A stretch of 24,135 bases of DNA, taken from NCBI GenBank assembly GCA_010909165.1, contig VJWM01000388.1, positions 1-24,135 of the forward strand, given 5' to 3'. Below, piece by piece: positions 1 through 20,356 of this stretch (the stretch's first letter is position 1; each line of letters starts with the position of its first letter). A program made the position numbers and the translations under genes. The notes beneath the pieces were generated by a model. That model had not been told where the DNA came from. It searched no databases and was given only the letters and a program-made list of their open reading frames with translations. The stretch is from Anthoceros angustus. Lineage: Eukaryota; Plantae; Anthocerotophyta.

Positions 1-253
1 GGGGAGAGGAGGAGGAAGAGGAGGAGGAGGAGGGAGAGGCAAGAGGAGGAGAGGATCGAGGTAGAGGAGGAGGAGGAGAGGAGGAGGAGGAGGAGGGAGG
101 CGAGAGGAAGGAGGAGGAGGGAAGCGAAAGAGAGGAGGAGATTATAAGGAGGAGGAGGAAGATGGAAAAGAAGAGGAGCAAGAGGAGGGGAGAGGGAAGG
201 AAGAGGAGGGGAGATGGGAAGGAGGAGGAGGGGAGGGAAGGAAGAGGAGGAGG
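1..253. repeat. GA-rich low-complexity tract, degenerate (GGA)n/(GAG)n
   Basis: Almost only G and A on the + strand (gaggaggagg...) up to the switch at ...gaggaggagg|cccattcc. Confidence 0.95.
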
Positions 254-790
254 CCCATTCCATGCTGTGATTTCAAGTCCGTTCCATGATTTCGGTCTCA
301 ATTTTTGATGCGTAACGGTGTGACATGAGGTTGGTGAAGGGATGGTGGCGGGCGGATCACGTCTACTAGCGGATCTTGTACTTGCGAGCATTGCAAGGTC
401 GGCCAAGACCTGTTCAATCGTGATTTCCTCTCAAATTTTCAATGCGTAACTAGCTAGTGTGATTTGATGTTAGAGAAGGCGATAGTAGCATGGCGGGGTG
501 TCTCGTGTACATGTACAACTCAAGTAGTTGCAAGGACCCATTCCATGTGTATTTCCTATCTCAAATTTTCAGGTGATGCGTAACTATGATGTGAAGTTAG
601 GAAGGCGATGGAAGAATGGCGGGGTCTCATGTACATGTATAGGCAAGGTGAGGCCAAGACCCATTCCATCTTGTGATTTCCTACCTCAAAATTTTATTTG
701 ATGCGTAACTAACGGTGATGTGACATTAGAGAAGGCGATGCTAGTAGGCGGTCTTGGGTGAATAGGGAGTGACAAGGCGATGCAGTAGGA
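254..790. repeat. Degenerate tandem array, about four units of ~125-135 bp
   Basis: The block gtgatttc...tcaaatttt...(g)atgcgtaac...gaaggcgat recurs. TGCGTAAC-containing cores start at about 307, 441, 575 and 700. Confidence 0.85.
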
Positions 791-1301
791 GGGACGTGTT
801 TGGAGGGCGGATCCGGGTCGTAGCACAAAGAAGGCAGTGTACTATCACCGCAAGTATGAGACATGTGTTGAGTGTGACAAGGAAAACAACGCAAGGAGTG
901 GAAGAGGTGGGTGGCGGAGGAGGATAGGAATGGAGCAACCACAATATGGTCGGCGAGGGGCAAAAAGGCGTAACGGACATGAGGCGGTTGTCTAGGGGAG
1001 AGAGAAGGAGGGAGGACTTGGGCCAAACAACCCCATGCGCACATAGCAAACATGGGTCCATAGCACAAACTCAGAGGCACAAAAGGCACAGTGCTCAAGG
1101 ACAAACTGTAAACGTGTGGACGTGTACAAAGTATGTACGTTATCCTGTGCGATATATTTATATAAAATAGAATATGACCGTATATCACAGAAATTACCAT
1201 ATAGTATATGTGCCATGAACAATACATGTATTTTACGAAGAATGTATTTGTACATGTATTTATGTATATGTATATTCATAATGAGTATAGTGGAACTACT
1301 A
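421..1301 (+). repeat. ~880-bp direct repeat, copy A (partner 7469-8348)
   Basis: Collinear with 7469-8348 from tgatttcctc...tgcgtaactagctagtgtgatttgat through ...gtatagtgg(g)aactacta. Differences are mostly 1-3-bp indels. Confidence 0.95.
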
Positions 1302-1419
1302 CTTGATAAGCAGCCTGCGGCGGTTGTGCCGAGAAGAGGCGCCACACGCGCCCCCTCTCTCCATGCCTTCATACTGCAGTATAAACCGATGCATGGGGTA
1401 CCCAACTCCATGCTCACTG

Positions 1420-3420
1420 CGACAGATTCCGCTGCCTTGCTGCGATGTCCTCATCGGATTGGAAGGAATAGGGCACATGGATGCCCGAGCATTATGGAAG
1501 CAAATTCCATTAGTCCTCAATTTTATTATCCCGTCCTCCTCCGACATTTAAATCATCGTGCCAAGCACTCGGTATAGGGCCATCCTCTTCACGAGGGTCC
1601 ATACTGCCCTCGTCCTCATCTCCTTCCAGGTTCATAGTCGAGATAGCCCAGCCACGGTCCTTCTAAAGACATCTCCGACGGTGATTGATGATAGAACTTG
1701 TAATCACCTCACATAAGCATCGATAAAAATTCCTTGCATTACGCCCAAGCGTTAGAAGTGCGAAAAGTGTTAAGTGGATGCAATGATGTTCCAAAACTTC
1801 AAAATCAATGACTTCCAAAGACATACACTTACAATCCTCGTCAAGAGCTTCCGAATTTAAGAGAGTTCGTGGCTCGCACTTTTTCTTTATGCAAGCACAC
1901 TGCTACTCAACACGAACACCGTAATCTTGACCCCCGGCAAAGCTTCAAACCCATAAGGCTTTGAAGTCACCTGAATATCCGGATCTCCTTCCGCTTCTAT
2001 CAAAGTTGCCGGACCACATACCGGCTCTCGATTGGCAGCACCATTGTGGCCATAAATCCACAATTTCAGCATGGGTGTCCACACCACATTGTCTTCTTGA
2101 GCTCTGCGCTCATGTCACAAGCATCCTTCTCCGGAGAATTGTCTCATCAATGGTTAGTGTGTCCGCAATTGAGCAGTCTCCTCAAAGCGTAAAAGGTGAG
2201 GATTAGAATCACGGCGGCTTTTGACTTGGCCATCTCGATTTCCCTCCGCCCTCGCCGTTGTGCTCACCTTTGCCGACCAGGATCCACGAGAGTTCAGGGC
2301 CCGCGCTCGACATCAGGCTCGTTAGCTGTGCTCACGAATTGGAACAAGTCGAACTTTGGTGTGCATCCACTCCACGGCTCCTTTGCGTGGGTTGCTCGCC
2401 TTCTTCCCTTTTGGTCTCTTCGTTTTGGTTTGTCTACATGCGGTTTCTTCTTCCGATCCACCAATTCCTTCTTCCGCCCAGCCACTCTGCCAAAGCAAGC
2501 GGTTGATTACGGTGACCTTCTCCCTCAATGCAAAAAGGCGTGAGGATGCGCACCGAAGTCACGGGCAGCGGCGCAATTGACAAAAATCACGAACAAGCGG
2601 CGTGGGCGGCGCGGCGTTCGGCTTGCGGAAGTGGGCGCAACTCAGCTTGGTGAACACGGTGTGGCCGTGATGGGCCTCCATTACGGTAAGGTTGAACGCC
2701 TAAAAGGTCGGGGCGGGTTAAAAGCTGCGAGATCGCCGCGTTTGTGTGTCCATTTTGGAACCCTAATTTCGGCACCGCTTGCTTTGCCATGGTTTCGTTA
2801 AGCAGGTGCCCATGTTTTCCACGTGGTGTTACGTACTGCATTAAATGATTCCGATAGAGCGGCAAGCCATTTATGTCCTTGACAAATGGCGTCGGATCCG
2901 ACTTGATAGGTAGATCTTCTCCAACGGTGAATGCAAATATTGGCGCTAAGGCATCCGGCTTGTTCTCCGATGTCTCATACTAATTTGCCCTCCTCCTTGT
3001 TTGTTGCTCTGGTTGTGGTGGCTCGTTCGCGTTCGCGAGGCGTGAACGTCACACCATGCTCCACTCCACCCATACCGATGAGGATACGAGGTAGCTTCAG
3101 CGATTGCTGCTCCTTCAATGTAGTTTGTATCCGGGTCGTTGTTCACCGTGGGTGTCATGCGGATCGGAGTGCGGATGGGAGGAACTTGTCCGCATCGTAA
3201 TGTCTTGCACTCCAAGCATGCGGCGAAAGGAGCATCCGATCTATTTCCCATAAGCGCTTGCAAACTTTGCCAGCGATGAGGCGACCACATTGAAGTGCTC
3301 TTTGTTGAAAAGCTCTGTTTCATAATTAATTCGTGCTGTTGGATGTTTTCCGACAACCGTCAGGGCATGCGGGTTTGCAATGGTAATCATCGCGATGGCG
3401 ATGAGCTTCACCTTGTATTA
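1420..3420 (-). pseudogene. Fragmented unassigned ORF, divergent from the transposase
   Basis: Protein-like stretches in shifting minus frames (e.g. HALTVVGKHPTARINYETELFNKEHFNVVASSLAKF; LKLPRILIGMGGVEHGVTF; EALDEDCKCMSLEVIDFEVLEHHCIHLTLF). No family recognised and the boundaries are approximate. Confidence 0.3.
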
Positions 3421-4355
3421 AACATGCTTGCGTCGAGGTCGAAGGACTCATCACCATTCGTGCACCCCTATGTGCCACGCCTCGGAACTTGAACTTGTAT
3501 GCGGCTATGGAACTTAGAAGACGAGGAGATGCGCCCTCGAGTGAGCCATCAGCAGCAATGAGAGGTCTCTTTCGCCCTCGTGTGGAGTTTTGGGTGCATC
3601 GGGGGCGATATTCTTGGCGACGTTCCCCACCCTCCGTTCACCTCACAGGCTGCAGTGTACATATCATCCGAAGCCAATGTCGGAGACATTGCACTATGAG
3701 AGCTTGCGTTTCGTTTGCAAACAGGGGTGGTGTCTCCTTGAAGAAGGCGAGACGGACACGATTACGGAGGATTTCCGTAAACCGTGTTGCAACAAAGTAT
3801 GTATTCAACGACTTTCGAGGAAGGTTTCGGAAGAGAGGCAAAGGTTCCTTAGGTTGGGAAGGTCGGAGAGACATTCCTAGAGACCCTTGTAAGACGACCA
3901 TGGTTCGAATGGCAAAGACATACTTTCACAAGGCACCGGTTCCAATCAAGTGTTGCACGAAATCCTTGAAGGGTGTATTGCATAGGGTCGGAAAGGTACG
4001 AGGAGGTGAAGGGCGAGTCTTTTGAATTCACCATGGGATTGTAGCAAGCCAAGCCCGGGTGAAATCCTCTCATGCATTGGGCGCTATTGCATGGATGGAT
4101 GCAACATTTACGCAATTGGCGGCGGCGCCTAATGTTGAAGTCTACAATCTTCCGACACTTTCACCAAACTAGAAGTGTGGACACAATACAAATGTGGCAT
4201 GGAGCAAAAGGGCTGCGGTATATTTCGTATGCTTACTTTACGAGACTATGGGAGCAGAACTTCAAGTGAAGATACCCAAATCCAATCGGTTTTCAACATG
4301 TTCTCTTTGCGGTCTAAAGTTCAACATTGAACCTTTGGATCGCAGACGGATCAAG

Positions 4356-5082
4356 GTAAGCTCATCGCTCCACACCGTTTTCGGCATGGTATAAAGGTGA
4401 AAGGTTGTGACATGTGGGCCATCGATATCGTTGTGATGGTGGGAGGTTGAACCTTGGTCGAGGTAACGGTTCGGCCCCTGCGATGAAGGCGGGCGGTTGC
4501 GAGCGCCATCGGGTGGGAGAGGGAGGCGCTGGCGCCCTCGGTGGGAGGGGAGGAGGAGGCGCGGCATGCTGCGCCCTCATGGGTGGAGGGTGTGCGAGAG
4601 GAGGCGGCGGCATGCCGGGACCTAAACCCTAAAGGAGGAGCGCCGGCATGCCGCCCTCATTGAACGGAGGGCGGGGGGTTGCGCATGCCGGTGCCCTCGT
4701 GTTGTGGGAGGGAGAGGAGGGCGCGGCATGCGCCCTCATGGGTGGAGGGTGTGCAATGGGGGAGGGCGGCAACATGCGTGGACCTAAACCCTAAAGGAGC
4801 TTGGGAGGCGCCGCATGCCACATCCCTAATTGAGGGGGAGGGCGGGCGGCGTGGCGCCCCGCCAGATGGGATTTAAGGACTGGATGCAGGCCATACAACG
4901 GGTGGATCCCTAGGTTCATTTGTTGGGGCATGACCCTTCCGAGGGTTGCCATCATGCTATTGCCTTTGCCCCTCGGTGGATCGTCTAGACTCCGGCGATA
5001 GTAGAGTTCGTCTGGTTGAAGTTGGTTGGTCGTTAGCGCGACGTTATATTTCATGGATGGACGACATGATGTTTGGTTGAAG
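4356..5082 (+). other. Probable phase-0 intron (727 bp) in the transposase
   Basis: Donor AAG|GTAAG at 4356 and acceptor ttggttgaAG|GCG at 5082. Joining them gives CSLCGLKFNIEPLDRRRIK-ASIYRDALNKHRIKLMEE in frame, with spacing plausible for the family. The intervening DNA is GC-rich repeat. Confidence 0.6.
4530..4860. repeat. GC-rich ~160-bp tandem duplication, each unit containing a telo-box
   Basis: ggacctaaaccctaaaggag at 4618 and 4780. gcggcatg..cgccctcatgggtggagggtgtgc at ~4561 and ~4722. AAACCCTAA is the plant telomere-type motif. Confidence 0.85.
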
Positions 5083-6589
5083 GCGAGTATATATCGGGAC
5101 GCGTTGAACAAACATCGCATAAAGCTTATGGAGGAGGCGGAAGAAGTTGACAAAACATCGAGCGAAAGGATACGAGCCTCACAAGTACATGTTGTTATGT
5201 ATCGATGGCATGGATCGAGAAAAAACATCCTTACGCATATACTTAGATGGCCTAAGGAGCTAAAGAAGGCGTAGTCCATGTGGTGGGGTGTATGATCCAC
5301 AATCACACGTTCAAGTCCGGGCGTATCACTCGCAAATTTGCGGAATGATGCTAATTTAACCATATGCATTATCCAAGATGTGATACATACATATGTTGGC
5401 TTACTTCCCAAGGTTCTATATTTGCAACTGGACAACACATGTCGGGAGAACAAGAATCAACTGCTGTTTGCTTATCTCAATATGCTCGTGGAGCTGGGGA
5501 CTTTTGAAAAAGTGAAGGTGGGCTTTCTTCTTGTAGGTCACACACATGACCAGGTGGACCAAATGTTCTCGTGTTTTTCCAAACATTTGAAGCACAAAGA
5601 GGCAAAAACTCTTCCCGTCATGCAGGATATATTGAGCAAGGCTTTCACGCCAAACCCGTGAAGGTCCCACCGAGGTTCCGGACTTCCGTTCTTTTCGTCG
5701 GCCTTTGAAAATAGGAAAGGCGGAAGTTTAAAATGCGGTTAAGCTAAACAATCTATCATACCAACACCGGTTCAAAATCACGCGGGAGGAAAAGTCAGCG
5801 GTAAAAGTATTATTGAGTAAGCATTCGACCTCACCGTTATGGGAAACAGAAGATGGGCTGGAGTTCTTGTCTTTTATTCCAAATCGAGATTGGACCTACA
5901 ACCACCTAGCTCTGAGCCAAGGACAAGAAAGGCGTTGATGGAAGCCTCACGCGAGATGGAGTAGACCACTTAAGGAAGGGTTTGCAAAAGCATCAACATA
6001 TCTAACGCGAGGAGGTGGTGGAGTGACAGGAGGATCAAGAGGAGATCGCAACTATTGTGGACAATAACATCGGCCTTTATGCGAAAAGGCGGTGGAAGTG
6101 GTATGGCGGATCTGCAGATGCACTTGTACCCACTGCGGTTCGGAGGCTATATTGGGTGCCTTATTGAGACGTGCCTCACGGACATGTACTTGGAGCTTAC
6201 AGTGTGGAAAGACGGGAACAAGAGGTCGAGCGGATGAATGGTGACATCATGGAGATAAAAAGGTATGTTTATTGTCACCTTGTGAGGGGACACTCCTGTG
6301 AGGGCATTACAGGTTGCAAAGGTCTTGAGTGTGCACATGACCGATGACCCCTACTTCACTGCAGGTGGCGACCGAGCACAGATGCATACGAGGGCAAGTA
6401 TGTCGGGGAATACTTTGTTAGGACCAGGAGGAGAACTACCTCCTACCAACAAAGGTGCAAAAGCATGGAAGCCTCCCAACATTCGAAGTTGTTTGTCCAT
6501 AAGAGTCATTGTGTACTATGGGTTCAATCTCACTTCTAGGAAACATCATGCGTGGCGGATAAAAAGCTATCAAAGAAGTTAAGTGCCCT

Positions 6590-7468: not shown

Positions 7469-8348
7469 TGATTTCCTCAATTTTTCATTTGTTGCGTAAC
7501 TAGCTAGTGTGATTTGATATTAGAGAAGCGATAGTAGCATGGCGGGGTGTCTCGTACATGTACATGCGCAAGTAGTTGCAAGGTCGCCAAGACCCATTCC
7601 ATCTTGTTATTTCCTATCTCAAATTTTCAGGCGATCAACACTATGATGTGAAGTTAGGGAAGGCGATGGAAGAATGGAGGGTCTCATGTACATGTATAGC
7701 TGCAAGGTGAGGCCAAGACCCATTCCATCTTGTGATTTCCTACCTCAAAATTTTATTTGATGCGTAACAGTGATGTGACATTAGAAGGCGATGCTAGTAG
7801 GCGGGGTCTTGGGTGAATAGGGGACAAGGCCGATGCAGTAGGAGGGGCGTGTTTGAGGGCCGGTCTTTGTAGCACAAAGAAGGCGAGTGTCTATCACCGG
7901 CAAATATGAGACATGTGTTGAGTGTGACGGTGAAAACAACGCAAAGTGGAAGAGGTGGAGGAGGATAGGAATGGAGCAACCAAGCAGCCATGGTCGGCGA
8001 GGGCAAAAGGCTCGTAACGGACATGAGGCGGTTGTCTAGGAGAGAGAAGGAGGAGGACTTGGAGCCAAACAACCCCACGCATAGCAAACATGGGTCGCAT
8101 AGCACAAACTCGTAGGCACAAAAGGCCGAGTGCTCAAGGACAAAGCGTAAGCGTATCGTGGATGTGTACAAAGTATATCGTTATCCGTGTGGCGTATATG
8201 CTTATTTTATACAAAATAGAATATGACCGTATATCACGAAATTACCATATAGTATATGTCACCATGAACAATATATGTGTATTTTTAGAATGTATTTGTA
8301 CATATATTATGTATATGTATATTCATACAGTATAGTGGGAACTACTAA
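7469..8348 (+). repeat. ~880-bp direct repeat, copy B (partner 421-1301)
   Basis: Same alignment as copy A. It begins inside the 130-bp sub-repeat array and lacks the first unit and the GA tract that precede copy A. Confidence 0.95.
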
Positions 8349-10137: not shown

Positions 10138-10518
10138 TAAACATTTCTTGAAACGTTAGGGCACCGATCAAGTAATTACCCTAAAACCATAGTAGGATGC
10201 GGCATCTGGTGGCCTTGTACATAAAACACACAATCAAACAGCTGGCTTGATTGCTAGGTTTATTACATGTGTCTGGTTGGGGATCAACTTGCAAGTTGAG
10301 ATTGGGATTACTGCACACGTACTAGAGAACATCGAGGGGCAGCGGTAATGTTTCTAAGGCAAGCTCATCGCGTGAGAAAGTGTCTCACTTCATTGCCTTT
10401 GCATCATCTTCCTCTATCCCATCAACTTTTGAGGCGAAGGCCATCTTGCATCAAGTGTATACCCTCATCCAAAAGGTCTCCAATATGTTCTTTCATTCTC
10501 ACGACGACAGAGGCACAA

Positions 10519-11637
10519 TCAGGCCTTTCCAATTTCTTTTTCACTCATGCAAACCTCCTTGGCCCAGGGAGATATTCCTCGGCGGTGTGGCTCATGGGTG
10601 AGCTCCTCTTACACATCGCGCATACTTCCATGCATACTCGCTGGAATGAATTCGCACCTCTTGTCGCCTCAATAGAAATACAATGGCGGCGACAACAAAG
10701 TAGCCATCAAAGATGTCCCACTCCCGAACAAGCATCTACTATCCAATCGCCTTCCTTAGAGAATGTCTTGATGAGCTTCATCATCAACCCCAAGGCCTTT
10801 GGTAGGGCGGACAACAAGTTTGTCGAGTGAATGATATAAGTTTCTTCACCCGGTTTAAGTGGCCAATCGCAATCTTCCATTGTTAAATTGTGCAAAGCAT
10901 TGATTTACATGACGCATTGCCGTTGTTGTCTTCTCAAACCCCATCCTCATGCATACTCAGCGGTAGTGTCGAAACCACCTTTGTCATTGTTTACGTTTAT
11001 CTTGTCCCAGACAAACGAAACGAGTCCCCCTTTTTGGCACCACTTCCGCATTGCCTCCCTCACCAAATGGGCATCTTCAACACCATTCATGATTATCCGA
11101 TACTGATCACATTTTGTTAAATCATGGAAGGCATGCAAAACATTTCCCACTTGCCAAGCATCAAAACGGGGGTCCTTTGAGCCTTTCTCAGAACCACGGG
11201 GCACATCCATCACAAACAAAAAGTACCTTCTCTTCCTCACGTACCCTCACATGTCGAGGATATCTCACCATGTACCCGATATCGCACCTTTTCTCGAATG
11301 TGGAGCAGTGAATTGAAGGAGTCCATCCTCTATGTCTCGGTCTACTAGTTGTCTTTGCTCATCTTCTAAGCCCTTCCATGTGTTCACCTCATAAATGAAT
11401 TATTGAAAATTCTCGGGCACTTTCGCACCTCAATATCATACATTCTGCACATGACGGAAACCAATATCGGCGTGGCTGCGGTCTTCAATCTCGAATCCAG
11501 GAAGATGTCGGCCGGAGGAGTTCCGGCCAAATGAAGGGGTCCCCATGGGCGCGGCATGGCACCCTCGATCTCGGCTCTTGGGGCCGGGGCATCGCGCACC
11601 CTTTGCCTCAAAAGGCGGGAACCCAGGGGCGCCGCAT
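10519..11637 (-). CDS. Beta-class N4-cytosine/N6-adenine DNA methyltransferase (N6_N4_Mtase family), copy 1, frameshifted as assembled, ~370 aa reconstructed
   Basis: Motifs in order: DILDM..EEEKVLLFVMDVP(R)G (motif III-IV equivalent, 11196-11207); VGNVLHAFHDLTK; FVWDKINVNNDKGGFDTTAEY; (Q)RPLGLMMKLIKTFSKEGDWIVDACSGVG-TSLMATLLSxRHCISIE (motif X-I-II, DACSGVG at 10716-10736, compare QKPxxLxxxLIxxxSxxGDxVLDPFxGSGTTxxAAxxxGRxxIGIE). Catalytic motifs preceding the SAM-binding motif is the beta arrangement. The start (11637) and stop (EIGKA-TGA, 10519) are inferred. Confidence 0.82.
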
Positions 11638-11649
11638 CCAGCCCTAATG

Positions 11650-12130
11650 AGAATCATACACAAGCTCAAGCAATAGCATTGATTTATAATAGAAAGTACA
11701 TGCCTTTATGTAGGTAAGGTTGTTGTAAGTTAAGTGGTTGTAAGAACTAACCAATTAAATAACTATTAGAAGAAAACTAGTGCCCTAAGGGCTAAATTAA
11801 TTATTAAGTCCTAGGTGCCCTAGTGAAGAGTGCCCTAATAGTAAGCTATTTTATCACTCCCACTCACTATGAACTAGGGGTGATTTTCGACCAAAAAAGG
11901 GTCAAGGAAAACTAGCCTAGCAAAACTAGTCCCTAACTAAACTTTTAAAAGCATTAAGTAAAACTGAAAATAATAATCACCATTAAAATAACTCCCACTT
12001 AAGGAGAACTGAGGTGAGAACTAATCACCCAACTTTAAGTAATTAGGTTGGATTAAAACTAATTAAAAGTAGTTCAGAAAATATAATAGCCTAATTTTCA
12101 AAAGGAAAATACAAAGGATAATAGGTAATA
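11650..12130. promoter_or_regulatory. AT-rich spacer, putative (bidirectional) promoter region; duplicated at ~13895-14385
   Basis: Sharp AT-rich island. Minus-strand TATAAAT at 11682-11688, about 45 nt upstream of the inferred MTase ATG. GTGCCCTA occurs three times (11780, 11815, 11830). It could alternatively be an intron. Confidence 0.35.
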
Positions 12131-12189
12131 CCCTCCTTCCTCCTTTTCGCGATTTGCGATTACGGATTTGTTGTTTGGCTTGCGGTGTG

Positions 12190-12768
12190 ATGGCGATGGC
12201 AATGGCAATGCGGCCTATGGCAACCAGTACTAATCACGCCTTACGGGAGGCGCACACGTGGGCGCCATCGTGCCGTAGTCGCCGCCACCCTCTCCCAGCG
12301 GCCGCTCGCTCAGCCGTGCGAGGCCCTCCTAGCGCCAGGCGTCCTTGCGGCGAGGATGCTCATGGGCGTTTCTTTGGCGCTCTAATAGAAAGGTAAAGAG
12401 GGCGCCCTACTGCAGATGCCCATAGTCGGCGTTCCGCTGCCAATGGAGAGTCTCCGCCTCCACAGACCTCGTCTCTCTGCACTTTCAAAAGAAGACTCAC
12501 ATTGATCATTGATCGACCTCATCCTTGGAGGATGAAGCTGAAACGAGGGCCTTAGGATCCTACACAAGGCAGCGTTCTAGCACGAAAAGAGGGCATGTCC
12601 GAGAATGTGAGATTATGCCTTGAATTTGCCATTTCTCCTAGGATGCATAGATTTGTAAAGCAAATGCTGGATATGTCTACCAAAGGGAAGCACAACCTAG
12701 TTGGCGAGGATGTGCCCCCTCAAATCCCTCCCGCCTCCCCTCCCCCTCTTCAATCAATGATGCTCCTT
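12190..12768 (+). pseudogene. Unassigned low-complexity ORF divergent from the MTase (second copy 14449-15063)
   Basis: Starts with MAMAMAM, after a ttggcttgcAG acceptor-like site (14443 in copy 2). Contains RDAHGRF, TPTLIIDLTSSLEDEAET, KKRR and a Pro-rich end. It is cut at the duplication boundary. Confidence 0.3.
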
Positions 12769-12785
12769 GACAAGAGGCTGTCCCA

Positions 12786-13883
12786 GCCTTTCCAATTTCT
12801 TTTTCACTCATGCAAACCTCCTTGGCCCAGGCGAGATATTCCTCGGCGGTGTGGCTCATGGGTGAGCTCCTCTTACACATCGCATACTTCATATCCATGC
12901 ACTCGCGGAATGAATTCACACCTCTTGTCGCCTCAATAGAAATACAATGGCGGCGGACAACAAAGTAGCCATCAAAGATGTCCCACTCACGAACAAGCAT
13001 CTACTATCCAATCGCCTTCCTTAGAGAATGTCTTGATGAGCTTCATCATCAACCCCAAAGGCCTTTGGTAGGAGCGGACAACAAGTTTGTCGAGTGAATG
13101 ATATAGCTTCTTCACCAGTTTAAGTGGCCAATCACCAATCTTCCATTGTTAAATGTTATGCAAAGCATTCGGTAACATGATGCCCATTGCGGTCACTTGT
13201 CTTCTCAAACCCCATCCTCATCACATACTCAGCGGTAGTGTCGAAACCACCTTTGTCATTGTTTACGTTTATCTTGTCCGGACAAAGCGAAGCGAGTCCC
13301 CCTTTTGGCACCACTTCGCATTGCCTCCCTCACCAAATGGGCATCTTCAACACCATTCATGATTATCCGATCGATCACATTTTGTTAAATCATGGAAGGC
13401 ATGCAAAACATTTCCCACTTGCGCATCAAAGCGGGGTCCTTTGAGCCTTTCTCAACCCACGGGCACATCCATCACAAACAAAAGTACCTTCTCTTCCTCA
13501 CGTGCCCTCCACATGTCGAGGATATCTATGCACCGATATCGCACCTTTTCTCGTAATGTGGAACAGTGAATTGAAGGAGTCCATCCTCTATGTCTCGGTC
13601 TACTAGTTGTCTTTGCTCATCTTCTAAGCCCTTCCATGTGTTCACCTCATAAATGAATTGTTGAAAATTCTCGGGCACGTGACACCTCAATATCCTTACG
13701 CACATGGCGGAAACCAATATCGGCGTGCTGCGGTCTTCAATCTCGAATCCGAAGATGTCGGTGAGTTCCGGCCAAATGATGGGTCCCCATGGGGGCGCAT
13801 GCACCCTCCCGATTGGCTCTCGGCTCTTGGGGCCGGGCGCCCGGCACCCTTTGCCTCAAAGGAACCCAAGGGGAGGCCGACAT
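12786..13883 (-). CDS. Beta-class N4/N6 DNA methyltransferase, copy 2, frameshifted as assembled, lacking the copy-1 stop
   Basis: Same motifs as copy 1: EEEKVLLFVMDVP (13461-13469), YQRPLGLMMKLIKTFSKEGDWIVDACS, RHCISIE. A GGA>TGA change lies in motif I (12981-13001) at a CCG/CG site. Most frameshifts fall at different positions than in copy 1. Confidence 0.78.
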
Positions 13884-15063
13884 CTCAGCCCTAATGAGAA
13901 TCATACACAAGCTCAAGCAATAGCATTGATTTATAATAGAAAGTACATGCCTTTATGTAGGTAAGGTTGTTGTAACCGTTAAGTGGTTGTAAGAACTAAC
14001 CAATTAAATAACTATTAGAAGAAACTACTTAGTGCCCTAAGGGCTAAATTAATTATTAAGTCCTAGGTGCCCTAGTGAAGAGTGCCCTAATAGTAAGCTA
14101 TTTTATCACTCCCACTCACTATGAACTAGGGGTGATTTTCGACCAAAAAGGGTCAAGGAAAACTAGCCTAGCAAAACTAGTCCCTAACTAAACTTTACTT
14201 AAAAGCATTAAGTAAAACTGAAAATAATAATCACCATTAAAATAACTCCCACTTAAGGAGAACTGAGGTGAGAACTAATCACCCAACTTTAAGTAATTAG
14301 GTTGGATTAAAACTAATTAAAAGTAGTTAGAAAATATAATAGCCTAATTTTCAAAAAGGAAAATACAAAGGATAATAGGTAATACCCCTCCTTCCTCCTT
14401 TTCGCGATTTGCGATTCTGACAGTTTTGTTGTTTGGCTTGCAGGTGTGATGGCGATGGCAATGGCAATGGCGACAGCTATGGCAACCCAGGGCGTGCCTA
14501 ATCCTGCCCACGGGAGGAGGCGCACACGTGGAGGCGCCATCGTGCCGTAGTCCTTCGCCGCGCGACCCCTCTCCACCGCGCGGCCGCTCCGCTGCAGGCC
14601 GTGCAGGCCCTCCTAGCGCCCAGAGGCGTCCTTGCAGGCGAGGGATGCTCATGGGCGTTTTGCTGGGCGCTCTAATAGAAAGGTAAAGAGGGCGCCCCTA
14701 CCTGCAGATGCCCATAGTCGCGTTCCTGCTGCCAATGGAGAGTCTCCGCCTCCACAGACCTCGTCTCTCCTGCAGCCTTTCAAAAAGAAGACTCCTACAT
14801 TGATCATTGATCTGACCTCATCCTTGGAGGATGAAGCTGAAACAGAAGGGCCTTAGGATCCTACACAAGACGCGTTCTAGCCTGAAAAAGAGACGCCTGA
14901 TGTCCAGGAATGTGAGATTATGCCTTCAGAATTTGCCATTTCTCCTAGGATGCATAGATTTGTAAAGCAAATGCGATATATACCAAGGGAAGCACAACCT
15001 AGTTGGCGGATGTGCCCCTCTCCCTCCCCCCCCCCTCCCCCTCTTCAATCAATGATGCTCCTT
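12786..15063 (+). repeat. ~2.28-kb tandem duplication, unit 2
   Basis: Same alignment as unit 1. The AT-rich middle is nearly identical, while the GC-rich parts differ by many small indels. Confidence 0.96.
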
Positions 15064-15732
15064 AAAAATGTCCACCTTTGCCAAATGTGCTTATAGGAAA
15101 GCTTGTTGCCTACAATATGTTTCTAAGAAGAAGCTATGGCAAAAAGGATTGCAGGGTTGTGGAATGGTATTTTCACGGAGACACAAGGAGGCCACATTTA
15201 TCCTCTATGTCGTTATAGTCCTAGGATTCGATCCCAAAGGGAATGGTTTTGTGTCAAGGTGTTCCAAAACTATGGGTTCTAGCCCTACTCAGTTAGTTCC
15301 TACCCAGCCGCAACCTACTACGTCCAAGACCCACCACGTGTAAGTTCGGCCACCCGCCCGTAGACTCGGTCACCCTGATGGGCGGCTCAACCATGCGGTT
15401 GGTCCCACCTGCAGCGCCGCAGCGCTTCTGACTTGACACCCGGCTCCTCGGCGTGATTCTAAGGGTTATAGTCTCACACACAGTTCGCTACTCCAGATCA
15501 CCTCCGGGGTATCCACCCCAAAACTCACGGCGGACGCCTACCTCGGCCACTCACGCCCGCGCCTCACTCCATCACCGATTCGCTTCATTCCACTCTTCAC
15601 CCCCTCTCCTCCCGCGCTCCCCAAACTTTCACCTTCACCTCCCTAGGCTCCTCCTTACCGTCGACTCACTTCCTCTTCCCCTAAACTCTCGAGACACCAC
15701 CACACACAAGTTGCTCTCGCCATCCCCTCTCG

Positions 15733-15820
15733 GGCCACACCCTCCTCTGGAGCCCTACAGGCCACACGGGCCCCTACCACAGGCCACAGACCCCTATCAC
15801 AGGCCACCACGGACCCCTCT
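15733..15820. repeat. Short tandem repeat, 20-22-bp unit, three to four copies
   Basis: acaggccac...cccct at 15757, 15779 and 15799, with a degenerate ggccacacc at 15733. Confidence 0.8.
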
Positions 15821-16249
15821 CTTAGAGTTAAACACAATTTGGTTAGACAGAGGTTGGAAAGAAGGAGGAAAATCTTTGGAGCGACACCATTTGTCTGGAT
15901 CTATGGACTACATGAAATCCTCTCCTTTCAGTGCGTGTGGCGCCCATCACCGCTAGCCACCCCGGATGCGGAGCTTGGTCACTCACTCTCGACCACCCAA
16001 GGATCTCACAGCCCTCTTGTGAGAGGCGGTGCACAATCGGTTGTTGTTGACGGATGTCTCCAATCAACCCCAGATCGACACACGGAAGCTCACACAGAAA
16101 TTGTCTATCCGAGACACGGAAAGGTCTCTTATACATCCATGGAACACCACGGCTCACTCTTTCTCGATGTCTAAAAAATCGGCTATCCACCACGGCGCAC
16201 CTATTCGGTAACTATAGCTCCAGCCCTTAAAACACCCTATCCCTAATCC

Positions 16250-19780: not shown

Positions 19781-20356
19781 TTAGGTTAAAGGTTTGGACA
19801 GTGTGTCCATTATACCCAAACATTTCATGTGTTTCCTATGTAACTCAATTCCCAATGACTTTGTTAATAAATCAAACATTGTCTAAAGTTTGAACATAAC
19901 TAATATTTATGGTTTGATCTTCTAACTTTTCCCTTATGTAGTGATACTCAACAGCTATATGTTTAGTTCTAGAATGAAAAGCGAGTTTCGTGCAAGTGCA
20001 ATGGCACCCTGGCTATCACTAAACAAAGATGTAGGCTTAAGTTGAGGATGATGAAGTTCACTCAAAACTAACCTGGACCACACTATGTCTTTAGAAACTG
20101 AGGTTAGTACCATGTACTCAGATTCAGTACATGACAAAGCTATAGTAGGTTGTTTCTTACTTGACCAGGATATTGGTGCTCCTCCCAAGAGTAATACATA
20201 CCCCGATACAGATTTTCGTGTGTCGGGGTCACCAGCATAGTCGGCATCAACATATGCCGTTAGAGTTAATGTGTTGATAGCTGGTGTATGCTTGAACATC
20301 AGTCCTGTGTACATAATTACCTTTAAGGTATCTGAATATACGCTTAATAGACATCC
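19781..20356 (-). pseudogene. pol: Ty1/copia pol fragment: end of RT plus RNase H
   Basis: MSIKRIFRYLKG; AYVDADYAGDPDTRKSVSGY...ISWSSKKQPTIALSCTESEY...DSQGAIALARN; after a frameshift FHSRTKHIAVEYHYIREK; after another DLLTKSLG...LG, with the stop at 19781. These are classic copia RNase H motifs. Confidence 0.93.

Follow-up and report, generated by a model that had tools for sequence, protein, structure and literature searches.

A stretch of 24,135 nucleotides from Anthoceros angustus (contig VJWM01000388.1, positions 1 to 24,135, here called the window) contains two tandem copies of a gene that resembles the prokaryote-type DNA methyltransferases of the beta class. We consider it likely that this is a divergent, multicopy beta-class methyltransferase-like gene that is associated with a transposon and has been tandemly duplicated, and that the breaks in its coding sequence are largely technical. 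In this reading a 2.26-kb piece of a repeat element has been duplicated head-to-tail, and there is one methyltransferase-like gene in each of the units. The gene is a member of a small, unannotated eukaryotic family in which the half that binds S-adenosylmethionine (SAM) is conserved and the catalytic loop has the sequence D-[VL]-P-R-G, and it would most likely be cargo, or an accessory gene, of a family of cut-and-paste DNA transposons. The duplicated units and the two genes are placed in the window as follows, with the evidence for each in brackets. P0005 is one of the relatives described below, and the family hidden Markov model (HMM) is that of the same relatives.

10523 to 12768, strand not applicable: unit 1 of the tandem duplication, about 2.25 kb (self-blastn and repeat spacing)
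12786 to 15063, strand not applicable: unit 2 of the tandem duplication (self-blastn, repeat spacing and junction comparison)
10520 to 11473, minus strand: methyltransferase-like gene, copy A (three-frame translation, tblastn with P0005, family HMM)
12785 to 13726, minus strand: methyltransferase-like gene, copy B (three-frame translation, tblastn, family HMM, phrog_18293)

The duplication is seen directly on aligning the window with itself. Positions 10523-12768 match 12786-15063 with 90.9% identity over 2341 columns, with 55 mismatches and 111 gap openings, and the repeat families in the window are spaced by 2247-2307 nt, matching the duplicated units. The bases at the junction (12769-12785) are weakly similar to those at 10503-10522, i.e. 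17-20 bases on each side. This resemblance suggests that no spacer separates the units, which are probably contiguous and are arranged head-to-tail. In unit 1 the stop codon that follows the C-terminal sequence SEKEIGKA coincides with the boundary of the duplication. An earlier reading of the DNA made from its letters alone (the sequence-only reading) had described two minus-strand copies in tandem, and the self-alignment together with the presence of the motifs in both units confirms this.

On three-frame translation copy A lies mainly in a single frame, with stops and brief out-of-frame stretches, and copy B is spread across all three frames. Both are read from the minus strand. The start region of the frame, TPILVS, is found at 11456-11473 in copy A and 13709-13726 in copy B, and SEKEIGKA at 10522-10545 and 12785-12808 respectively. 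The motifs that lie between them are these.

11193 to 11216, minus strand: FVMDVPRG, equivalent of motif IV, copy A (translation and alignment)
13455 to 13478, minus strand: FVMDVPVG, equivalent of motif IV, copy B, preceded by the loss of one base in a run of C
10953 to 11012 (copy A) and 13225 to 13275 (copy B), minus strand: VW-x-K-I-N...TTAEY (translation)
10716 to 10805, minus strand: Q-K-P-like motif and motif I (the cofactor-binding loop), ending ...GDWIVDACSGVG, copy A, corresponding to PF01555 positions 164-193
12990 to 13070, minus strand: YQRPLGLMMKLI...GDWIVDACS, the Q-K-P-like motif and motif I of copy B
10690 to 10716 (copy A) and 12955 to 12981 (copy B), minus strand: TSLMATLLS (translation)
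10656 to 10691 (copy A) and 12920 to 12955 (copy B), minus strand: RRHCISIEATRG (translation)

In the minus-strand frame of copy A, FVMDVPRG precedes DACSGVG (10716-10736). This is the permuted order, and it is found likewise in the relatives P0001, P0005 and P0006. All the motifs cited by the sequence-only reading were located in both copies, on the minus strand and in beta-class order. Its reading frame of ~370 amino acids (aa) was an overestimate; the recognisable frame, from about 11473 to 10520, is only ~320 aa.

The family assignment was examined using PF01555, the N6_N4 methyltransferase family, for which the gathering threshold is 26.7 bits. The frame in the window is too fragmented to be scored as a whole, and its stop-free pieces give 14.8 and 16.3 bits at profile positions 164-193. 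Weak matches to phrog_18293, a phage methyltransferase family, were found for the block of copy A (expectation value E 2.9e-4) and for copy B (E 4.4e-4). Other searches of Pfam and PDB with single pieces gave only sub-threshold PF01555 matches and noise, and a search of the ESM Atlas with a 99-aa piece gave no usable match (scores ~0.5). A 97-aa piece of the window was more informative. In an exhaustive phmmer search of 1.84 billion representatives it retrieved P0001 with E 7.7e-5, the sole true relative there, and word-indexed homologue searches added P0005, P0006 and P0007. These four proteins make up the family, and all come from one public (Logan) run, SRR33208241; three word-indexed searches (with P0001, A2 and A3 as queries) returned no annotated plant protein belonging to it. 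Scored against PF01555, the relatives P0001 (47.3 bits), P0006 (50.1 bits) and P0005 (30.0 bits) pass the threshold, whereas the pieces of the window itself remain below it. A piece of L004, the contig that encodes P0007, scores 34.8 bits.

The relatives connect the window to the domain. With P0005 as query, tblastn aligned 256 aa with copy A (11423-10716) at 27% identity with E 2.7e-19, and copy B was also matched. A further tblastn match has E 6e-14. With the family HMM, pieces of copy A reach 45.3 and 31.5 bits, and a piece of copy B (13112-12990) reaches 41.2 bits. The matches of P0001 and P0006 to the phage DNA-methyltransferase families phrog_67 and phrog_498 span almost the entire domain (E 8e-10 to 1.7e-18), and those of P0005 are confined to C-terminal stretches (E about 1e-8). 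Against PDB the family profile finds M.RsrI (E 1.4e-7), TTHA0409, DpnA, M.MboIIA, CcrM and N4CMT (8s9m, E 8e-4). Bacterial PF01555 proteins match both copies at the cofactor-binding block, and hhalign aligned the block YQRP...GDWIVDACSGVG(T) with such proteins with a probability of 98.5-98.8%. When the N-terminal half was compared with bacterial PF01555 in the same manner, only the C-terminal block was reported. The best prokaryotic matches extend over only 25-70 residues, with 33-48% identity. Judged from these alignments, the homology to PF01555 is real yet remote.

The fold was examined on the relative P0005 rather than on the protein of the window. Its AlphaFold2 model has a mean predicted local distance difference test score (pLDDT) of 57, with an N-terminal core of 80-90. 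The top PDB matches of the model found by Foldseek (CcrM, M.BceJIV, M.MboIIA, M1.HpyAVI, TTHA0409, N4CMT and MT-A70) have a probability of 1.0 with template modelling (TM) scores of 0.3-0.5, and are exclusively beta-class DNA amino-methyltransferases or MT-A70. The model also matches PF01555 clusters in the ESM Atlas. Its nearest neighbours among the AlphaFold DB clusters include at least four proteins annotated as DNA methylase N-4/N-6 domain-containing with accessions beginning A0A388 (E 3e-14 to 1e-10, compared with 1e-7 for bacterial entries). This prefix is used for proteins of Chara braunii (PMC11982790), and they would come from that species on the basis of the accession. They are the closest structural neighbours and comprise several paralogues of 284-1005 aa, but they have only 17-24% identity to P0005 and no sequence search retrieved them. 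This suggests that the fold has expanded in a streptophyte alga. Several uncharacterised A0A388 proteins are also present among the nearest structural neighbours in AlphaFold DB. The motif order, the fold and motif I support the placing of the gene in the permuted beta-class N6_N4 (PF01555) amino-methyltransferase fold family, as the sequence-only reading had it, as a highly divergent member.

The family is multicopy, and conserved at the level of protein, in at least two other organisms. This was seen in contigs from ~100-Mb DNA runs of organisms A and D, and the depths given here are those of these runs and not of the genome of the window. Over the coding stretches the summed word depth is ~25-340 per bin, with single contigs at 5-190. 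Those of organism D match only in short islands, which coincide with the conserved motifs and are spaced much as in the window (606 compared with 581 bases, and 193 compared with 179 bases). Translation of the flanks that do not match gives VVCPYQRP, MDAYAGSGT, VMHGVEE, CKGGGMVSF and NDQGGF, and these are diverged homologues that retain the key residues. A search of sequencing runs with the whole region listed none, probably since assembly errors break the 31-mers; a search with an error-poor AT-rich stretch did give runs, chiefly through a separate high-copy repeat. The suggestion of a repeat-embedded, possibly amplifying lineage is supported insofar as the gene lies in repeat or transposon DNA and belongs to a multicopy family.

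The association with a transposon derives from a neighbouring gene in the window.

5296 to 5658, plus strand: core of a DUF7869 DDE-type transposase (PF25273, E 6e-40, 137 bits)

This core is convergent with the methyltransferase-like gene and lies ~4.9 kb from its 3' end. Its nearest clusters in the Atlas are eukaryotic DUF7869 proteins, and the model of the nearest cluster (not that of the protein in the window) resembles DDE_3/rve transposase cores. We infer that the methyltransferase-like gene travels with the DUF7869 transposase.

The interruptions of the frame were analyzed by comparing the two units. They differ by 108 insertions or deletions (indels), of which 71 are of one base and 22 of two bases, and by 44 substitutions, so that the ratio of indels to substitutions is 2.5:1. 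The indels are enriched about threefold at CG/CHG sites (37%, against a background of 13%), and the CG-poor AT-rich stretch is near-identical between the units. This spectrum fits errors left uncorrected in a long-read consensus at methylated sites, and not natural decay. Given that indels outnumber substitutions and are enriched at CG/CHG, most of the frameshifts in the window are probably errors of the long-read assembly. Any frame call within 10523-15063 is consequently to be treated as unreliable. A short-read contig of organism A that overlaps 11203-11306 differs from copy A at two stop sites (11249 A>G and 11267 A>T), and by small indels. If these differences are applied to copy A both stops are removed, giving the open frame ...EKRCDIVHGRDILDMRGYVRKRRYFLFVMD. 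As a separate observation, the differences within 10523-15063 look as though cytosine methylation had disturbed the base-calling of long reads and the assembly had not been polished.

A number of results weigh against the reading of a transposon-associated gene with largely technical breaks. The pieces of the window fall short of the PF01555 threshold, and the structural model has a low pLDDT (57). The tandem arrangement of the units is known from this assembly alone. Linkage of the transposase and the methyltransferase-like gene within the window rests on their proximity; no credible terminal inverted repeats around the two were found in the window. Two features of the coding sequence also count here. 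TAA at 11400-11402 of copy A is CAA in copy B, a clean C-to-T nonsense substitution; the other stops of copy A are located on indels. In addition, two frameshifts that flank TSLMATLLS, with TGA at 10707-10709, are common to both copies. The frameshifts of the two copies had been proposed to complement each other, and this holds in part, failing for these two shifts and the TGA. Both copies in the window may be truly dead.

Whether the two copies are dead relics, i.e. true pseudogenes irrespective of what the family does elsewhere, is in our judgement evenly balanced. Stops and frameshifts are present in both, copy A has the clean nonsense substitution, two shifts are shared, and the N-terminal domain that lies upstream in the relatives on L002 and L004 was not found in the window. 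The bias of the differences toward indels and toward CG/CHG sites points instead to base-calling errors, and the short-read contig of organism A reads through two of the stops.

A second question concerns the chemistry of the family, and here the critical feature is motif IV. This is D-V-P-R-G in copy A, and D-L-P-R-G in P0001, P0005, P0006 and P0007. The equivalence is based on a MAFFT alignment, the whole-domain PHROG matches and the pattern GD...strand-D-x-P; the D-[LV]-P-R-G sequence follows a hydrophobic strand, itself preceded by a conserved (G/A)D-x-L-x-M segment. On alignment with bacterial PF01555 proteins (having DPPF, DPPF and DPPY) the sole residues common to all are the D, one P and the W of VW-x-K. 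The proposal that DVPxG is the catalytic equivalent is upheld to the extent that the D and one P align with those of DPP[YF], but the second proline and the aromatic residue of the canonical (D/N/S)-P-P-(Y/F/W/H) sequence are replaced. Active enzymes use DPPY, SPPY, NPPY or DPPW, and changing SPPY to APPA in N4CMT abolished its activity (PMC8885841). The cofactor half is well kept, with YQ[KR]P, D-x-C-S-G-x-G and an acidic residue after strand 2, and from these motifs the family protein would be expected to bind SAM. The D-[LV]-P-R-G sequence is constant among members that are only ~30% identical, and the variant loop is therefore a trait of the family rather than the result of decay. Because the defining catalytic tetrapeptide is absent, we call this a divergent PF01555-type methyltransferase-like protein and not a writer of N4-methylcytosine (4mC) or N6-methyladenine (6mA). 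From the sequence-only suggestion of a further lineage of 4mC/6mA writers, the PF01555-type fold and the SAM-binding half are retained, while the catalytic motif, D-V-P-R, speaks against it.

The protein may be a pseudo-enzyme or act on another substrate, keeping the binding of SAM, of DNA or of both and serving the transposon in some other way, such as recognition of the DNA of the element or regulation of transposition. We regard this as possible, if on the unlikely side. It would account for a non-canonical loop that has been conserved rather than randomly decayed, adjacent to a cofactor half that is canonical. MT-A70 relatives include non-catalytic partners, for example METTL14. An extra DNA-binding domain or a ParB domain was not found in the window, which counts against such a role. 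No ParB_N domain (PF02195) upstream was seen by Pfam matching of the minus-strand pieces, nor by eye, although indels or introns could hide one, and tblastn with the ParB-methyltransferase P0010 and with the open reading frames (ORFs) upstream in L002 and L004 found nothing in the window. In L004 itself, a ParB-like appearance of 4363-4557 received no support from Pfam, NCBIfam, PHROGs or BLASTP.

That intact members are active N6-adenine or N4-cytosine DNA methyltransferases, making this a transposon-borne writer akin to N4CMT or DN4MT1 with D-V-P-R as a working loop, seems unlikely to us. The fold and the closest relatives are those of DNA amino-methyltransferases, the SAM-binding motifs are intact and motif IV keeps its D and one P. 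The protein is conserved in other species, and conservation of D-[LV]-P-R-G at ~30% identity argues for selection on the loop. Yet motif IV has other residues where the aromatic residue and second proline would be, and N4CMT is inactive when its motif is mutated to APPA (PMC8885841). Moreover there is no specific affinity to N4CMT, and DN4MT1 has TSPPY. It is doubtful that the family truly writes 6mA or 4mC.

Bacterial or phage contamination, or a chance resemblance of motifs, is hardly credible and effectively refuted by the eukaryotic context and the multicopy homologues: the domain family is overwhelmingly prokaryotic and viral, but the best prokaryotic matches have the short extent and low identity given above, the contig is shared with a eukaryotic DUF7869 transposase and what is presumably a copia-like fragment, there are significant full-length matches to eukaryote-like contigs, and homologues are multicopy in DNA runs of other organisms, so that the contamination considered in the sequence-only reading is ruled out.

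The preferred reading, of a divergent gene carried by a transposon, can be compared with known systems. The bacterial and phage beta-class enzymes (M.RsrI, CcrM, M.MboIIA, phrog_67 and phrog_498) have the same fold class and the same order of motifs, the catalytic half coming before the SAM-binding half, and GD...hydrophobic strand-D-x-P, W-x-K, E-Y, Q-K-P and D-x-x-x-G-x-G are all present in the family. They differ in having (D/S/N)PP(Y/F/W) where the family has D-[VL]-P-R-G, and identity outside the motif I block is ~15-20%. In addition the family is eukaryotic, multicopy and repeat-embedded, and it showed no sign of a restriction partner or of a ParB domain.

N4CMT of bdelloid rotifers (PMC8885841) and MpDN4MT1a/b of Marchantia are likewise eukaryotic, permuted amino-methyltransferases of prokaryotic type, and DN4MT1 is also a tandem pair (bioRxiv 10.1101/2021.02.12.428880). 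Both are proven writers of 4mC encoded by single host genes; N4CMT has SPPY and a chromodomain (PMC8885841), and DN4MT1 has TSPPY (bioRxiv 10.1101/2021.02.12.428880). The family has DVPR, and is multicopy and transposase-linked. It is set apart from DN4MT1 on the basis of the described TSPPY motif. The family profile scores the bacterial N6-adenine enzyme M.RsrI (E 1.4e-7) better than N4CMT (E 8e-4), with no specific affinity to the latter.

Methyltransferases captured by retrotransposons provide a third comparison, since here too a mobile element bears a gene of DNA methyltransferase type of prokaryotic or host origin. These are cytosine-5 (C5) DNA methyltransferases (PMC5890265) and Dam-like adenine enzymes, the latter being of the alpha-class D12/Dam type with an Asn-Pro-Pro pocket, linked to reverse transcriptase or a DIRS integrase, and found in long terminal repeat (LTR) and DIRS retrotransposons (bioRxiv 10.64898/2026.05.21.726589). 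Those enzymes lie inside retrotransposon polyproteins, whereas the gene in the window is adjacent to a DDE (DUF7869) cut-and-paste transposase. Its domain is PF01555-type and the neighbour a DDE transposase, so it does not belong with D12/Dam. Our search of the literature found no paper on DUF7869, nor on PF01555-type genes in DNA or plant transposons.

The manipulation of host epigenetic control by transposons is illustrated by mobile elements that themselves encode enzymes modifying DNA. Those documented so far are C5 and Dam-like enzymes in retrotransposons (PMC5890265; bioRxiv 10.64898/2026.05.21.726589), and if a beta-class gene of PF01555 type is linked with a DDE transposon in a plant lineage, the phenomenon would be extended to another class of enzyme and another class of transposon. 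In its strongest form the proposal is that a streptophyte or plant cut-and-paste transposon carries its own amino-methyltransferase of phage or bacterial derivation, with an active D-x-P-R-G loop, that writes 6mA, 4mC or another mark on the DNA of the element or its host. This is improbable on present evidence; if true it would add to DNA transposons a class of self-encoded epigenetic writer that has so far not been described in them. The D-x-P-R-G loop poses the question of whether arginine in place of the stacking aromatic residue is compatible with base methylation, or signals that catalysis has been given up for another role. Protein databases contain almost nothing of the family, which would thus be easily missed in surveys of eukaryotic 6mA and 4mC.

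The contigs of the relatives (L001-L004) contain no DUF7869 but have further features. A conserved domain, DWKLD-x-Y-x-RL...HRLVDNKTLEY...GIPVRVWRGFQGI, precedes the methyltransferase ORF in L002 (21-572) and L004 (4578-5285). It has no match in Pfam, NCBIfam or PHROGs, and is probably the N-terminal part of the methyltransferase protein, split off by an intron or frameshift. L004 also carries a Peptidase_C48 (Ulp1-like) gene at 11918-12892 and a fragment of a RecQ-type helicase at 15394-15961; we take this combination to be of the kind present in large eukaryotic DNA transposons. Upstream of P0001 in L001 there are paralogous tandem ORFs (3361-4053 and 4537-5094) that start MEPPNKRA..., with a faint match to Helitron_like_N (E 0.0085).

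One further repeat lies upstream of the gene in each unit.

11640 to 12130, and again about 13886 to 14385, strand not applicable: AT-rich dispersed repeat of very high copy number (word depth)

In DNA runs of three organisms the word depth of its contigs sums to 240-5300, and one run labelled as RNA contains it weakly. Clear terminal repeats were not found.

Elsewhere in the window, a direct repeat (443-1301 and 7493-8347; 86.5% identity over 897 columns, with 48 gap openings) flanks a 6.2-kb segment that holds the DUF7869 core, and could be part of an element, a nested insertion or a segmental duplication. Directly upstream of the transposase core is a GC-rich direct repeat of 85 nt (4528-4612 and 4687-4771) with a spacing of 159 nt. 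On the minus strand at 19958-20356 there is a 133-aa open piece with ...DADYAGD...SGY...PISWSSKKQ...TESEY, which has no Pfam match and is presumably the RNase H region of a Ty1/copia element. The first 260 nucleotides (1-260) are a purine-rich low-complexity array of GAGG/GGA, with overlapping copies of a 68-nt repeat.

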